DNA of 63,888 nt, the filler included, from Olpidium bornovanus S191 (taxonomy: Eukaryota > Fungi > Olpidiomycota), in assembly GCA_017911155.1 (NCBI GenBank). It is 28 parts of 28 records of this genome, joined end to end, with 100 filler letters (N's around TTAATTAATTAA, not from the genome) between each part and the next. Parts side by side here need not be neighbours in the genome. Positions count along the whole stretch, not along the records: positions 47,777 to 53,660 come from JAEFCI010003893.1; 27 more parts are not named here. One strand, 5' to 3'. The notes below the pieces were generated by a model. That model made no database searches and was not told the DNA's origin. It saw only the letters and a program-made list of their open reading frames with translations. Both the position numbers and the translations under genes were made by a program. Below, piece by piece: positions 2,269 through 54,005 of this stretch. Position 1 is the first letter of the stretch. The number at the start of each line of letters is the position of its first letter.

Positions 2269-2340
2269 CTGCGCGCGGCGCAGGGAAAGCTGCGCGCGGC
2301 GCAGGGAAAGCTGCGCGCGGCGCAGGGAAAGCGGCGCGCG
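2269..2340. repeat. 21-bp minisatellite ctgcgcgcggcgcagggaaag x3 plus a partial copy
   Basis: Copies start at 2269, 2290 and 2311. Confidence 0.9.
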
Positions 2341-2442
2341 CCGGGTGGGCAAGAAAGAGGGAGAGGGCCAAGCTGCTGCGCGGCGACATGCGGGCTGCGG
2401 AATACGGCTGCGCACAGCTTCCGCTTACGGGTCCGATGCACT

Positions 2443-2572
2443 CATGCAGTCGCATTGACACGCGTTCATGCAGTCACATTGACATGCACACATGCTTTCA
2501 CACTGACATGCTGACATGCACACATGCTTTCACACTGACATGCACACATGTTTTCACACTGACATGCACACC
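2443..2572. repeat. Degenerate CATG-rich minisatellite (core ttcacactgacatgcacacatg)
   Basis: Several imperfect copies read directly. Confidence 0.8.
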
Positions 2573-2784
2573 CTTTCACTTTTTTTTTTTTTTTTTTTTT
2601 GTTTTGTCCTGTCCCGCGGCATTGGGGGCGATGGTGCCCCATCTCATCGTCAAAAAAATCCCCCCCTTTCCCCCCCGCTCCTCTGAGAAATTTTTTTTTT
2701 TTTTTTTTTTTTTTCGTTTCGTTTCGTCAACGGAGGGGGATAAAGGGGGCCGGGGCGGGGGGGAGAAGAAGAAGTAGAAGAAAG

Positions 2785-2830
<46 letters not shown>

Positions 2831-2865
2831 CACCACCCAACCCCCCCCCCCCCCCCCGCCCCCCC

Positions 2866-47676: not shown

Positions 47677-47901
47677 NNNNNNNNNNNNNNNNNNNNNNNN
47701 NNNNNNNNNNNNNNNNNNNNTTAATTAATTAANNNNNNNNNNNNNNNNNNNNNNNNNNNNNNNNNNNNNNNNNNNNAAAACAAAAAAACAGCAAAAACAA
47801 AAAAAGGTCGAGCGGCAACCCCGCATTCCCGGCCCGGCCCGAGACCGGCCGACCCTGACACGGTCCGACTCCTTCCTGGGGGTTAAAAAAAAAAAAAAAA
47901 G

Positions 47902-48422
47902 TCGTACGGACGTGGGACGGACGGCGCCTGATCAACCCGCTGTCGTCGTTCACGACGAGCTCGTTCGAAAACTGGTCCAAGACGTCGCCGTGGAAGATCG
48001 GCACGGTGTTCTTCTACTTCGACCCGCTTATCCTGGGCAACCTTGCGGACCTGCGGGCGCGGCTGGAGTCGATCCTGACGACGACGGACGGCGGGCGGCG
48101 GCTCTGGGACGGCAAGGTCATGTGCCTGCAGGTGACGGACGTGAAGCAGACGGGCGTGGTCGAGGTGCGGACGCTGACCAGCGCGCGCTGTCCCGGCGAC
48201 AACTTCGCCCTCCGGTGCCTTGTGCGCGAGCTGCTCATGGCTTACGTGGTCGAGAAGTTCCCGGGCGCCCTGTGCAGGACCCGCGCCGAGATCAGGGTGT
48301 TCAACGACGCGAGCTGCACGTGGAACAGGGGCGGCAAGGCAAAGATCCGATCGCTCGAGACGATGGCGAGCAGCACCGACATCGACAAGGCCCTGGAGCA
48401 GGCGGAGGTTGCCGTGGCGTGA
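47902..48422 (+). CDS. Bacterial-type small-conductance mechanosensitive channel (MscS family), last exon
   Basis: VRTWDGRRLINPLSSFTTSSFENWSKT..GTVFFYFD..LRARLESIL..LWDGKVMCLQVTD..VRTLTSARCPGDNFALRCLVRELLM..FPGALCRTRAE follows the MscS beta/alpha-beta cytoplasmic domains; preceded by CTGAC..AAG acceptor at 47901. Confidence 0.85.
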
Positions 48423-48710
48423 AAAAACCCCTCGCCCCGAGTGAAAGAGAAAGAAAAGTCTAAATAGCAAAAAAAAACTGTGAACGACACCAAAAACTTG
48501 CCCTTCTCCCCTTCCCACCCCACCCTCACCCCACCCACAGTTCTTTCACCGCGCGGGCGGAAGGGGCGAGATGGGGAAGGGGCTTCCTTTCCAAGTGAGG
48601 GGGCGGCGGCGGCCCCGCGAAGCCCGCGTGCCGGGAAAGAGCGGGGGAGGGTGGGGTAAAGGACGTCCCGACCTCCGCAAAACGCACGTCTTTCCCTTTT
48701 TCTTCGCTTC

Positions 48711-48741
<31 letters not shown>

Positions 48742-49447
48742 TTCTGCCCTTCGCTTTTCCACTTTATATTTTTTGTTTTCTCATTTTTTATTTCGGCACC
48801 GCTCCCTCGCACTCCGAAACGCTCCAAAGGCTTTTCGCTGTTCACAGCCCGAGCGGACTGGCCGCGCGCCCGTCGCCGCCGCCGCAGCCCCACCGCTCTT
48901 CTCTCACTCACTCTCTCACTCTCTCGCTCTCTCTTTCTATCTCTCTCACTCCGCACGCATAGGAAAGAGAAGGAAAAGAAAAAAAAGTATCTTAGGCTGG
49001 ATTTATCCCCCAGACCGTGTTTATGTGCGCGTTCGCGCGGGGCCCGCAACGATTGTGCGTATACGTATGTGTTTTTATATATGATATACGTGCATATATA
49101 TATCTTGTATATATGTGCGCCGGGAGGGTGAAAGAAAGGAAACCGCCACGCGCGCATCGGTTAAAGGTGCAATTCTTTGTCTTCTTTAATTTTTCTTTCT
49201 TTTTTGTGTATGTGTGTGTGCATTACGGGGGAGGGGGGAATTGGGGAAATCTGCGGGGCGAGCGGGTGTGTGCTGGCGCGTGCGGCGCGCGTGCGCCGCG
49301 AGAAACGCGCCTGAGGGGCCTGCGCGCGTGCACGCGTGCTGCTGCTGTTTGCCGGCGGTTTCGCGCGCCGCGCGTTGTGATGCTCCGGGGGAAGGGTGTG
49401 TTGCGGTGCCGGCCACCTGATCTTCTCCCCCCGCGCGCGCGCACTAC

Positions 49448-52400
49448 TACCTGAACGCGGACTGCGAAGGAACAAACAAACAAACAAACAAAAAAAAAAC
49501 ACGCGAAAAGGTTATAAAAACAAAAAACGGGAGGGCGGCGGGGTCGGGAAGGGCGGGTGACGAGCGGTGGCGGGGAGCCCGTCTCGTTTCTCAGCGGAGG
49601 CGCTCGTCCCCAGGCCCCCCCCCCCCCCCGGCGCGGACAAAATAAGATGCAGAAATAAAAACAATGTATGACCCACGGTCTGAACACTCTTCGTGCTCCG
49701 GTTGAACAAGTCCACCTCCCGATCCCGCTTCAGCTGGCGGACCGAGTCTTCCAGCCGCCGCCGTTCGGCGTCCTGCCGCCGCCGCTCCTTGGACTGCTCG
49801 GCGCGGATGCCGTCGATGAGCTTCCCGAATTCCTGCCTCAGAGCCGCGCCGCTCTTTGCGTTCCCCGCGCGGTCGCCGAGCGCCTTGAGCTGGCCCTCGG
49901 AGAGCTGCTCCTCCAGCTCCTGCACCCGCGCCCGCAGCGCGTCGACCTCGCCGGCCAGCCGGCTCGCCCGCTCGCCCTCGTCCGTGCTGCGAGACACGAC
50001 GCTGTCGAACTGCTTGAGGATCGCGTCCAGCTCCTGCTCGAGCTCGGCCTGCCGCTGCAGCATCTCCTCCTCGCGCGCGGCGTACTCGGCTCTCAGTCCT
50101 TCGGCCTCGGCCTTCCGGTCGGCCGCGTCCCTCCTCGCGTCGTCGAGCTCGGCCAGCAGCGCCTCCTGCTCCCGGGCGTCCGCGCGCGAGCCGCCGCCGC
50201 CCTTCTGCAGGCGGTCGAGCTCGTCCTGCTGGTCGGCGTAGTCGGCCTCGAGGTCGCGGTACCTCTGCGTCAGCGTCTTCAGCTGACCCTTCACGCGCTG
50301 GAGGTCCTCCCCGACTTGTTCGAACTCGCTCGCGCTGCGGTACTCGCCCATCATGCGCTCGGCCTGCTCCGCGGAGATCTTGGCCTCCTGCTCGAGGACG
50401 GCGACCCGCGCCAGGAGCTCCTGCGTCTTGGCCTCCTTCTCCGCCGCTTCGGCGAGCGCCGCCTCGAGCTTCGCCGAGAGACCTTCCGCCCTGGCGTCCG
50501 CGTCGCCGAGCTCCCCCTCGACCTCCGCCAGCTCGCGCGCGAACTGTTCCTTGACCGTCAGCATCCGCTCCTCCATCGACGCCATCTCCTCCTCGTGCGC
50601 CCTCGCGGCCTCCGCGGCCTGCTGCGCAAGCCGTTCGGCGTCCCTTCCGGACCCTCTCCTGGCTTCGTCCAGCTCGTCCGTCAACTGCTCGACCTGGTCC
50701 TGCAGCCGGCCAACCTCGTTCTCGGACCGTTTTCGCATCTGCTGGAGCTGCTCCTTCAGCTCCGCGGCCCCGGCCGCCTGCTGGGCGCTCGCCGCCGCCT
50801 CCTTTTTGAATTTCGCCATTTGGGTGACCATGTCTTCAATTTCTCTGTCGGCACTGTCCCGAACGTTCTGCAGGTCTTCTTTCAGCCTCTGGATTTCCGC
50901 CGACTGCTGGTCGGCCAGAGCGGCGTCTCGCGACGATCTCGACGACTCCTGACTTCGCCGTTTGCTACAGCGCCGCGGCAAACCGTTCGAAAGGCAAAGA
51001 TCAGCCCCGTCGTCCTCGACAACGCGAATGGGGCCGCGGTGGGTGATCCGTCACCTCGATTCATCCACAGCGCTCTTCATGTCCAGGTAGCTGGACGCCA
51101 TCCGCCGCGCCCTGCGGACGAACGCTTCGACGGAAAATTCCTCTCTCGACCTGTCGTCGCCTTCGTCGATGTCCAGGTTCTCCACCGTCCGCAGAAGCCT
51201 CCACGCGGCTCGCAGCGACTGCGCTACCTCCTCGTTTTGGCGGCGCAGAGAGGCGACGTCGACCATGGACTGCGTGAGCTGCTCCTGCAGTTCTTCGTTC
51301 TTCCGCATCAGCGCCTCCGGGGAGGCGCCGTTGTCCATCCTCCGCGGCGTTCTGGTCCTGGAGGACATGTCTTTCATCATTGCGCGGAGCGCGTCGCACT
51401 CGTCCTCCGCCTCCTCCCGGAGTCGCCGTTCGCGGGCGATTTCGCGGTCCATCTGTTGGACGTCGCCGCCGCCGTCCTCCAGGTTTTTCAGGGCCGCCCT
51501 GCTCCCCTCCAGCTCCCTCTCCGTCTCCGCCAGCCTGTCGGACAAGTCGTTCACCGCCCTCTCGCTCTTTTCGAGCTTTTCTCTGCCGCTTTGCAGCGCG
51601 GCTTCCGAGGTTTTCAGGCGCGCCAGGGCATCGTTCAGCTGCCTCCTGACACCGTCGTCCGCCATGACTTTCTGGAGCCGATCTTTGTACTCCCGGATCT
51701 CTTCCTCGGCGGCGTCCAACTGCCGGTTGAGGGTCGTGATCATCTTCTCGTCACCCCTTTTCCGCTCGGTCGCCGTGCTGCTACCCAACCCGGAGTCTCT
51801 GTCCCTCTCGTCGCCCTGCCTGTTCTGAAGCGCTTCTTCGAGCTTCCTCTTCTCGATGCTGAGGATGTCCGATCGCGTGACCGCCTCCTCGAGTTCCGTG
51901 CGAAGGCTGGCGATCTCGCGGTCGCGCCGCTCGAGGAGGGCGCGCCATTGGGAGTTCGTGTACCCGGTGTACGTGGAGTCTGACGCCGCCTGGGAATCGA
52001 TTTCGTCGTCGCGCAGCTGAGCCGCGGGCGTATCCGCGGCCATCGGCTGTCGCCCGGACCGCCGCTCGACGGCTGCGTCGGCGCGGAACTTGGGCCGCAG
52101 CGCCGTCATCCGCGTCCGCAAGGACGTCGCCGAGCTGGGCGTGTCGTCCTCACCGTTGCCGACGGCGTTTTCGGAGGCCGCGGCTCTCGGCCTGCCGGTC
52201 CGTCTGCCGCCGTCCGACGCCGCCGCATCCCCCGGCCCCGTCTCGTCGTCTTCCGGGATGACCGGCGTGGTGCGACCGGGCTTTACGATTTTCACTCCGA
52301 GGCTGGTCCCGGTGCTCATCCGCAGACTTGCGGTCACGGGCTTGACGTTAACCATGTTGACGGCCGCTTCCTTTTCCTCGTTTTCGGCCGGGCCGCCGCC

Positions 52401-52784
52401 TCCGGCAGCACCGACCGACCTTAAGGGCGGGGGCGCGTCCGTTGGCATCAGCGAGGTCCGGTTGGCCGTACTGGCCTCGATGTACGCGAACTTGACCTGC
52501 TGCGGCACGGGAGGCTGCTCGCCGTTTTCGCCGCTCCGCACGGTGCCTGCCTCGCTGCGGCCGCTTCGCGAGCCGTCGGTTCTGATCGACCGCGTAGGCC
52601 GCGCCGGCCTAATGCCCGCCCGCGGCGGCGGCGCCTGCGCGGCCGCGAGCCGCGGCCTCCGAAGTGGGGGGTCCTGGGGCATCGGTCTCGACTGCTGCCG
52701 CAGCACGGAACCCGACGAAGACGGGCCGGAATCGAACGGCCTGCGTATCCGGGAGACATCGTCGTCCTGCTTGCCGGGCAACAA
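49448..52784 (-). CDS. Large coiled-coil protein, possibly Uds1/involucrin-repeat-like; about join(51055..>52784, 49676..50967, 49448..49462); 5' end uncertain
   Basis: Disordered N-terminus then long heptad-rich E/R/A/L sequence; C-terminal LRQEFGKLIDGIRAEQ..ERRRLEDSVRQLKR resembles the conserved tail of fungal Uds1-type proteins (from memory). Two ORFs join at a phase-2 GT..AG intron; 52784 is a TTG. Confidence 0.65.
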
Positions 52785-53501
52785 AGGTTCCCGGGGGCGC
52801 GACGTGTCGGAGGAGTCGCGGGCGGGCGGTCTCCTCTGGGGAACGCAGGGGGGCGCGGGGGGAGGAGGGGGGGGGGGGGGGGGGGGGCGGAAGGGGCGGA
52901 AGAAAGCGCCGTCGGGATATGAGAGTTTGCGGGGGAAGAGTGGGGAAAGCGAATGCCATCGGCCGGTTTCCTCTGCGGGGCGAAGCGGGCTCTTACCCCG
53001 GCCTGCATGCGGCCGCCGGCGAGGGTCCTCGGAGGACCCGCGTTTCCGCTCGACTTGAAGGGGACGTGGAGGAGGGAGGGAAAGAGGGAGAGAAGAGGCG
53101 GCGCAAAGCCGACGTCAGGACGCGGCGATGCGATAGGCCGTGCGGAGCGAAGGAAGATGTAAGGCGGGGGTTGGAGACAGGCGCACCCGCAAGTTCCTGC
53201 TCCCACCATTTTGACGGGAGCCTGTCCAGGGGGTCCCGCGGAAGGGTGAAAGAGGGGAGCGCGGCGTGCCCTGCTCTCGCGAAGGCGGGAGACGACGACG
53301 GCGACGGGCGGGGCTGGCGCGCGCACGCGCACGGGCCGGGGTGGGGGGCGGGTGGACCGGTGCGGCGGGGGTTCTCGAGACGGAAAGGAGGACGTGCGGC
53401 GGGGCGGCGGGATTCGCACTGCTGCCCATCCGCGTCCCCGGGGCGTTCAGGACGCGCGTAGTGGGGGGGGGGGGGGGGGGGGGGGCCCCCGGGGGGGGGG
53501 G

Positions 53502-53548
<47 letters not shown>

Positions 53549-54005
53549 CGGCGGCGGACAACCTTGAACGCTTTTTCTCCGCGCACCTTCTCTGACCACC
53601 CGGAGCTTCCGACCAGTCCACAGCAGGCAGACGGCGATCCAGAGCCACGGCGCAGACCCCNNNNNNNNNNNNNNNNNNNNNNNNNNNNNNNNNNNNNNNN
53701 NNNNTTAATTAATTAANNNNNNNNNNNNNNNNNNNNNNNNNNNNNNNNNNNNNNNNNNNNAAGCGGGTTGACCGTCGACATAACTAAAGAGTCGACACGG
53801 AGAAACAATAGAGAAAAAGAAAGGCGTAACAGCAGGAGCAAACGGGAGGTACCGTCCCTGGACAAACGCGCAGATATCATGGTACGTTTCCCTGGTTTTG
53901 GCAAAAGTAGAAACGGATCGGGAAGCGCGGAAAATATGTGTTCCCCCGTCGCCTTTATTTTTCTTCAGAGAAGAAAAGGATCCGCCTCGGTCTCTTGTCG
54001 GCTCT

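Follow-up and report, generated by a model that had tools for sequence, protein, structure and literature searches.

The last exon of an expressed MscS-type channel gene in Olpidium bornovanus and the probable ancient bacterial origin of its fungal family

Two convergent genes on one contig

We analysed a stretch of 63,888 nucleotides of DNA (the window) from the Olpidium bornovanus S191 assembly GCA_017911155.1, made of 28 parts joined end to end. The piece under study, JAEFCI010003893.1, occupies window positions 47777-53660. It carries an MscS-like gene, represented by its last coding exon at the contig edge, and a coiled-coil gene convergent with it (Table 1).

Table 1. Features of the piece JAEFCI010003893.1 (window positions) and exons of the re-modelled Olpidium relative (positions in L006)
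Feature	Position	Strand	Details
Last intron of the MscS-like gene, 3´ end	47777..47901	+	at least 125 nt, extends beyond contig edge; poly(A) 47885-47900, AG 47900-47901
Last coding exon, MscS-like gene	47902..48425	+	173 residues; first codon split in phase 1; TGA 48423-48425
MscS beta-domain signature	47937..47981	+	in register: P13, F17, F22, N24, W25, K27
Alpha/beta C-terminal (cage) domain	47991..48260	+	residues ~31-120: strand-helix-strand-strand-helix
Lineage-specific C-terminal tail	48276..48422	+	residues ~126-173; helix predicted at 160-172
3´ UTR, MscS-like gene	48426..48862	+	includes (ATT)n microsatellite ~48718-48747
Convergent coiled-coil gene	49007..53232	-	1054 residues; X1 record 3
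Exons of the coiled-coil gene	53232-53207, 53053-52997, 52835-51055, 50964-49677, 49461-49007	-	ATG 53209-53207; TAG 49449-49447, remainder 3´ UTR
Exons of the re-modelled KAG5462791.1 gene (L006)	957-1150, 1384-1745, 1860-1931, 2051-2137, 2314-2831		

The plus strand reads 173 codons in frame over 47901-48422 up to the TGA stop, and the closest in-frame stop on the 5´ side lies at 47856-47858. The exon is preceded by sixteen consecutive A and the AG acceptor; its first two bases complete a Val codon, so that it is entered in phase 1.

Transcript contigs define the exon from the other side. Record 1 of run X1 (1614 nt, depth 46) fits the genome over 47905-48699 and carries a further 781 nt upstream which lie off the piece. 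Transcript depth is zero over 47777-47904 and run X11 breaks at the same point; the breakpoint at 47905 has to be read with the caveat that 47871-47904 is repeat-masked by read mapping. A splice junction at the predicted acceptor would produce just such a break. The acceptor proposed in the sequence-only reading is thus supported by the AG at 47900-47901, by the transcript leaving the genome at 47905 and by a phase-1 intron shared with a second Olpidium gene, KAG5462791.1, described below. The 3´ UTR is covered by X1 record 1 up to 48699 and by record 2 over 48751-48862, its gaps being masked repeats. Since they are spliced, the X1 contigs derive from RNA; contigs mapped to the piece behave as RNA throughout, and all gaps fall on masked repeats.

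The 781 nt upstream would encode at most about 260 residues before the 173, limiting the protein to about 433 aa and leaving room for transmembrane exons. Exons for the transmembrane helices and the pore lie further upstream, outside the contig, so that the exon in the window encodes the cage and not the pore. A scan of JGI metagenomes for the upstream exons found nothing, and a search with the C-terminal region of KAG5462791.1 did not recover the full-length protein of the window gene. Two runs of raw RNA reads filed under the same organism, X21 and X24, gave 2 and 0 reads and are uninformative on expression. Codon choice is similar in the exon and its convergent neighbour (GC3 of 0.93 and 0.86, respectively), and orthologues of the gene contain two to four introns and have eukaryotic neighbours. 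The exon belongs to an expressed, intron-bearing nuclear gene.

The neighbouring gene was predicted in the sequence-only reading as a spliced coiled-coil gene, and its four introns are directly visible in X1 record 3. This contig skips 49462-49676, 50965-51054, 52836-52996 and 53054-53206, all bounded by CT..AC on the plus strand, that is, four GT..AG introns of the minus-strand gene, and the joined exons form an open frame of 1054 codons. In NCBIfam, the protein has only generic coiled-coil matches (SMC, Rad50), far under the cut-offs.

Several further features of the piece were recorded. Roughly 150 nt separate the transcript contigs of the two convergent genes (ends at 48862 and 49007). The region between their 3´ UTRs (48700-48960) contains, besides the microsatellite at ~48718-48747, CT-rich tracts at 48890-48950. 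Two G homopolymers with few interruptions, at 52860-52890 (~30 nt, within an intron of the coiled-coil gene) and at 53465-53550 (~85 nt), are possible assembly or sequencing artefacts. Transcript depth is zero across 53293-53489. At the far end, X1 and X11 contigs fit only from 53587 (to 53660) and share the same non-matching sequence before that point; positions 53585-53586 read AC, consistent with a minus-strand GT donor. Either 53587-53660 belongs to another gene, as an exon whose splice partner lies beyond the piece, or it is the product of misassembly at the poly-G tract 53465-53550.

A single exon at a contig edge might come from contamination, from a chimeric contig or from a dead gene fragment. 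The long homopolymers, the loose ends at 53587 and the presumed linkage of the two genes at the DNA level would be compatible with such an origin. Against it, a spliced transcript contig of depth 46 spans the exon with its 3´ UTR and runs on upstream beyond the piece, the KAG5462791.1 gene has an intron at the same position, the reading frame is unbroken and retains every conserved residue, and the nearest relatives are fungal. We regard this explanation as extremely improbable; the view that the gene is eukaryotic rather than contaminating, already taken in the sequence-only reading, is upheld by the spliced transcript contig, the spliced neighbour and the matching codon use.

Family assignment of the exon

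The peptide contains the motifs WD.RRL..P, F.NW, LWDGKV..LQVTD, SA....F.LRC.VRE and P.AL.RTR.E. Every one of the MscS motifs named in the sequence-only reading is present and aligns with proteins of Pfam family PF00924. All 11 invariant columns of an 83-sequence alignment (A2) are retained in the exon, P13, F22 and N24 being among them, together with 15 nearly invariant ones. The beta-domain motif of MscS has been described as PNx2-hydrophobic-x4-hydrophobic2-Nx2R (PMC9367656); the signature in the exon differs from it in having L where MscS has N and K where MscS has R. In BLASTP, exon residues 2-27 align with residues 155-180 of Escherichia coli MscS and 229-256 of YbdG. It follows that the exon comprises the last strands of the beta domain, the whole alpha/beta cage and a tail. 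This tail, of about 48 residues, is lacking in bacteria, the bacterial relatives ending near residue 132. Its first ~20 residues are conserved in Olpidium KAG5462791.1, the phmmer alignment to which runs to residue 145.

An exhaustive phmmer search over 1.84 billion cluster representatives returned 1249 proteins at E<=1e-3, of which 491 reach E<=1e-10, the best at 3e-45. Identity to bacterial PF00924 proteins is 41-52%; seven proteins of comparable length match the exon at 41-47% identity, PF00924 being assigned to five of them. With the exon alone, no MscS match was obtained in NCBIfam and no useful match by phmmer against the PDB, which is due to the half-domain length of the query and not to lack of homology. 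PDB profile matches of the exon alone are weak (E 0.007-0.5), and each of them hits the correct place in MscM, MscK or YnaI. With the full-length Spizellomyces orthologue as query, the solved structures of bacterial MscS, MscM and YnaI are matched (E 8e-8 to 1e-4), as are NCBIfam MscS models. A Gly/Ala-rich block of TM3 type, GASLLASAG..G...AAKP, is present in the orthologues (alignment A3) and in the re-modelled KAG5462791.1 gene.

Structure prediction agrees with this assignment. An AlphaFold2 model of the exon (m72b435cc6b1b), built on the 83-sequence alignment, has a mean pLDDT of 82, with values of 90-98 over residues 31-120 and 57-78 in the tail. When it was compared with the PDB by Foldseek, the top 34 matches were all of the MscS family (MscS, YnaI, FLYC1, i.e. 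Flycatcher1, MSL10, MSL1 and MscK), with probability 1.00, E-values from 2e-3 and a TM-score of about 0.46 for the whole fragment; the E-value is modest because the fragment is half a protein.

Taken by sequence and model, the exon is confirmed to encode the C-terminal half of a member of a bacterial-type MscS subfamily, within the MscS superfamily (PF00924/PF21082). The bacterial-type character claimed in the sequence-only reading is borne out by the 41-52% identity to PF00924 proteins, by the retention of all invariant columns and by the exclusively MscS-family top matches in Foldseek. The complete product would be a small MscS-type mechanosensitive channel of about 400-430 aa; by analogy with bacterial MscS, we infer a heptamer that would open under membrane tension and release solutes on hypo-osmotic shock.

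Relatives, shared introns and origin of the gene

The best phmmer match is KAG5462791.1 of Olpidium bornovanus (58-59% identity, E 3e-45). The next-best fungal matches come from Spizellomycetales (Gaertneriomyces, Geranomyces, Powellomyces, Thoreauomyces, Fimicolochytrium and Spizellomyces); Rhizophlyctidales (Rhizophlyctis, Borealophlyctis) carry the gene as well. Logan contigs add two chytrid-like proteins, P0011 and P0012, and bacterial proteins follow at lower identity. P0040, which branches beside the fungi, proved to be Basidiobolus ranarum KAK9717632.1, whose gene has three introns and a eukaryotic neighbour, a P4-ATPase. The exon is 36-45% identical to the chytrid proteins (48-51% over the stretches matched by phmmer) and 38% to that of Basidiobolus. 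Family members are 370-440 aa long, a few having longer tails. Other public orthologue records include Spizellomyces punctatus SPPG_02582 and Geranomyces variabilis KAJ3177110.1, and public records already label the orthologues as MscS-domain proteins.

The Logan sequences (L089 and L090 from ERR12075085 and ERR12073413, L091 from SRR8816572) encode two proteins, of 723 and 401 aa, as uninterrupted reading frames on short contigs. Both proteins group with the chytrids within the clade and probably come from unsequenced or unlabelled chytrids.

Among the named hits of the best-scoring proteins, no non-fungal eukaryote was found, most hits being nameless, and no chytrid order beyond Spizellomycetales and Rhizophlyctidales appeared among named hits. 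A wide distribution of orthologues over eukaryotes had been set down at the outset as the observation that would speak against transfer; such spread exists within fungi, and no other eukaryote is seen among the named hits. No synteny was found between the window piece and the contig of KAG5462791.1. The window gene, its Olpidium relative and the chytrid genes share a WKIG motif and an insertion of two to four residues before LWDGK, both missing in Basidiobolus and in the aligned bacteria.

The deposited KAG5462791.1 protein (526 aa) is translated in wrong frames over its first ~350 residues, the N-terminal two thirds. A homology-guided re-model on L006 (JAEFCI010001608.1, 445-2831) gave a protein of 410 aa from five exons with GT..AG introns, homologous throughout (Table 1).

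Next, we compared intron positions. The window acceptor and the last intron of the KAG5462791.1 gene (L006 2138-2313) interrupt the same codon in phase 1, which specifies a Val and is separated by one residue from the Arg of R-T/I-W-D on its 3´ side. This site is uninterrupted in the genes of Basidiobolus and Spizellomyces. A phase-2 intron in the codon before K-W-P is found in Basidiobolus (L005 1109-1202), Spizellomyces (L007 4147-4222) and re-modelled Olpidium (L006 1151-1383). For the window gene this region lies off the piece, and the intron has no bearing on its placement. With two to four introns per gene of ~1100-1230 nt and uniform insertion, rough arithmetic puts a coincidence of both position and phase in three lineages at about 1e-5, so that chance is very unlikely. 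Bacteria have no such introns. Evidently, the fungal genes share an intron-bearing ancestor. Since orthologues with shared introns occur in Olpidium, chytrids and Basidiobolus, any transfer either predates the divergence of these fungi or the gene has moved between them.

On the bacterial side, a scan with one genome per GTDB species, whose query was an alignment headed by the Basidiobolus protein, found the subfamily in at least 491 species of more than ten phyla, including Acidobacteriota, Bacteroidota, Planctomycetota, Pseudomonadota, Chloroflexota, Gemmatimonadota, Verrucomicrobiota, Desulfobacterota-type bacteria, Chlorobiota and Actinomycetota; among the 80 loci listed, none exceeds 47% identity to the Basidiobolus protein. 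The genes around P0176, a bacterial relative, are densely packed in an operon-like bacterial arrangement. The E. coli proteins MscS, YbdG, YnaI and YbiO are only ~25% identical; the subfamily is therefore a distinct one, which E. coli lacks.

Three bacterial loci deserve comment. The MscS gene of L088 (Nocardiopsis yanglingensis JBJNRH010000028.1) is near-identical to Stenotrophomonas genes (branch length 0.007), which suggests a contaminating Stenotrophomonas contig in the actinomycete assembly. L086, from a Vulcanimicrobiota MAG, falls within Acidobacteriaceae, and L033, from a Verrucomicrobiia MAG, lies beside a Terriglobia MAG.

A single fungal clade was present in a quick maximum-likelihood tree of 95 rows, and in a FastTree of 405 rows one clade comprised exactly the 18 fungal rows. 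A careful tree of 51 rows (LG+C20; support given as UFBoot/SH-aLRT) yielded the fungi at 100/99 and the window with Olpidium at 100/99. A quick tree of 118 rows with GTDB sequences departed from this pattern: window and Olpidium moved to the bacteria P0014/P0029, a placement which the AU test did not reject (p=0.17) before the Olpidium protein was corrected. This split arose because both rows were partial and the deposited Olpidium protein is in wrong frames N-terminally. With the re-modelled row, support was 100/99 for the fungi and 99/89 for window and Olpidium joined to the chytrids, and the grouping with P0014/P0029 was rejected by the AU test (dlnL 55, p=0.0018). A careful tree of 74 rows with named bacteria gave the fungi at 100/100. 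Over the careful trees, window with Olpidium has a support of 100/98-99.

These results bear on the possibility that a bacterium passed the gene to this genome recently and that the intron was gained afterwards. P0014 is 52% identical to the exon over 132 residues, level with the chytrids, and the quick 118-row tree did place window and Olpidium beside P0014/P0029. However, KAG5462791.1 is closer, at 58-59% identity, and has an intron of the same position and phase; all careful trees join the fungi at 100/99-100, with the AU test at p=0.0018 against the bacterial placement; and the WKIG motif and the insertion before LWDGK are common to the chytrids and missing in the aligned bacteria. A recent transfer is highly improbable. 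The picture implied originally, of transfer into this very genome followed by intron gain there, is not supported in view of the orthologues in other fungi, their union in one clade (100/99-100) and the shared introns.

The bacterial sister of the fungi varies with the sample: Acidobacteriaceae at 91/87 in one tree, Erythrobacter plus a Phycisphaeraceae MAG at 90/79 in the 74-row tree. Acidobacteriaceae were thus a candidate donor that was lost with denser sampling. Since the sister group is unstable across samplings, we assign no donor. Actinomycetota, P0014/P0029 and P0035 are separated by starred splits from the remaining bacteria together with the fungi, so that the fungi come out nested under every root placed among bacteria. 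Rooted on Actinomycetota or on the E. coli paralogues, the trees place the fungi inside the Gram-negative radiation, with saturated outgroups and a shifting sister. As outgroups, E. coli MscS, YbdG, YnaI and YbiO are saturated (branch lengths 7-10), so that the nesting of the fungi in bacteria rests on distribution and the starred splits rather than on a secure root. Bacterial rows group mostly by phylum, and the alphaproteobacterial rows form a separate clade of their own.

The insecure root leaves some room for an ancient vertical gene of eukaryotes, e.g. of mitochondrial ancestry, which would have been lost nearly everywhere; one fungal clade, deeply branched inside and with introns in common, would be expected in that case too. 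Nevertheless, non-fungal eukaryotes are missing from the named hits, the fungal clade does not exceed clades of single bacterial phyla in depth and lies inside the Gram-negative radiation, and the alphaproteobacterial rows stand separately. We consider vertical inheritance from early eukaryotes most unlikely.

Within the fungi, Basidiobolus branches outside Olpidium plus chytrids (99/89-91). The published species tree places Olpidium nearer to the non-flagellated fungi. Owing to this mismatch between gene tree and species tree, losses alone may not explain the observed pattern. It is conceivable that after a single bacterial acquisition the intron-bearing gene spread from fungus to fungus among early-diverging soil fungi. 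The patchy set of carriers (Spizellomycetales, Rhizophlyctidales, Olpidium and Basidiobolus, with no other chytrid order among named hits), the outlying position of Basidiobolus and the habitat of the carriers, all of which dwell in soil or roots, would fit such spread. On the other hand, the shared intron fits either route, there is no direct sign of transfer between fungi, and branches within the clade are long (0.3-0.9), as for old divergences. Fungus-to-fungus spread as the main explanation is unlikely in our estimate.

An ancient transfer of a bacterial MscS gene to fungi, where it has been patchily kept, remains the explanation which we consider probable, with the window containing the last exon of an expressed small-channel gene. 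One Gram-negative (Gracilicutes-type) bacterium would have donated the gene to an early fungus in a single event; intron gain, vertical descent and many losses would have followed, and some later movement between fungi may have taken place. A narrower version is possible and put forward tentatively: one bacterial MscS may have entered the common ancestor of Chytridiomycota and terrestrial fungi, gained its intron before they split and been kept in few soil lineages as an osmotic valve, for instance for wall-less zoospores. The link to a wall-less stage, suggested in the sequence-only reading, is plausible for zoospores and otherwise speculation, since Basidiobolus bears the gene and has no zoospores.

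Comparison with known channels

MscS channels of bacterial type are known from eukaryotic organelles, from trypanosomes and, via transfer, from Microsporidia. Our literature searches found no paper on the present fungal clade or its origin and no experimental work on the Olpidium, chytrid or Basidiobolus orthologues. As far as these searches show, a clade of bacterial-type MscS in free-living early-diverging fungi is undescribed. Introns shared by three phylum-level fungal lineages are an uncommon kind of evidence, internal to the gene, for the great age of any transfer; if the ancestral transfer is true, it would be among the oldest datable transfers from bacterium to fungus, marked by an intron. 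For the window itself, the result is a genuine gene which does not point to contamination or recent transfer. A compact channel of ~400 aa in organisms whose wall-less zoospores face fresh water could also aid the study of chytrid osmoregulation, and some chytrids can now be transformed.

The closest known system is the bacterial subfamily itself (~350-400 aa; Granulicella, Edaphobacter, Mucilaginibacter, Pontibacter, Stenotrophomonas, Phycisphaerales). Its members align over their full length with the fungal orthologues and share the same motifs and PF00924; introns and C-terminal extensions distinguish the fungal side. Our searches found no solved structure and no characterised member of this subfamily of "small-conductance mechanosensitive channels".

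In Microsporidia, MscS2 is a bacterial-type MscS acquired by horizontal transfer, drastically reduced and specific to that group (Nakjang et al. 2013, PMC3879972), and it has been reported from Nematocida displodere (PMC11262690). It provides a precedent for fixation of a transferred bacterial MscS in a fungus-related eukaryote. Going by this description, MscS2 would differ from the fungal clade reported here. Microsporidian proteins were absent from the phmmer hits and from the PDB matches at E<=0.01.

The characterised fungal channels, Msy1 and Msy2 of Schizosaccharomyces pombe and MscA and MscB of Aspergillus nidulans, are proteins of 840-1011 aa, extended at both the N- and the C-terminus, which group with plant channels of the MSL9/MSL10 type, apart from bacterial MscS; they are built on the MscS core fold and contribute to survival of hypo-osmotic conditions (PMC9367656). 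The core fold is shared with the family in the window, whose best sequence matches among solved structures are bacterial. The distinction from the Msy1/Msy2 type drawn in the sequence-only reading holds: relatives of the window gene are 370-440 aa long and its transcript allows for about 433 aa at most, in contrast to the 840-1011 aa of the characterised channels.
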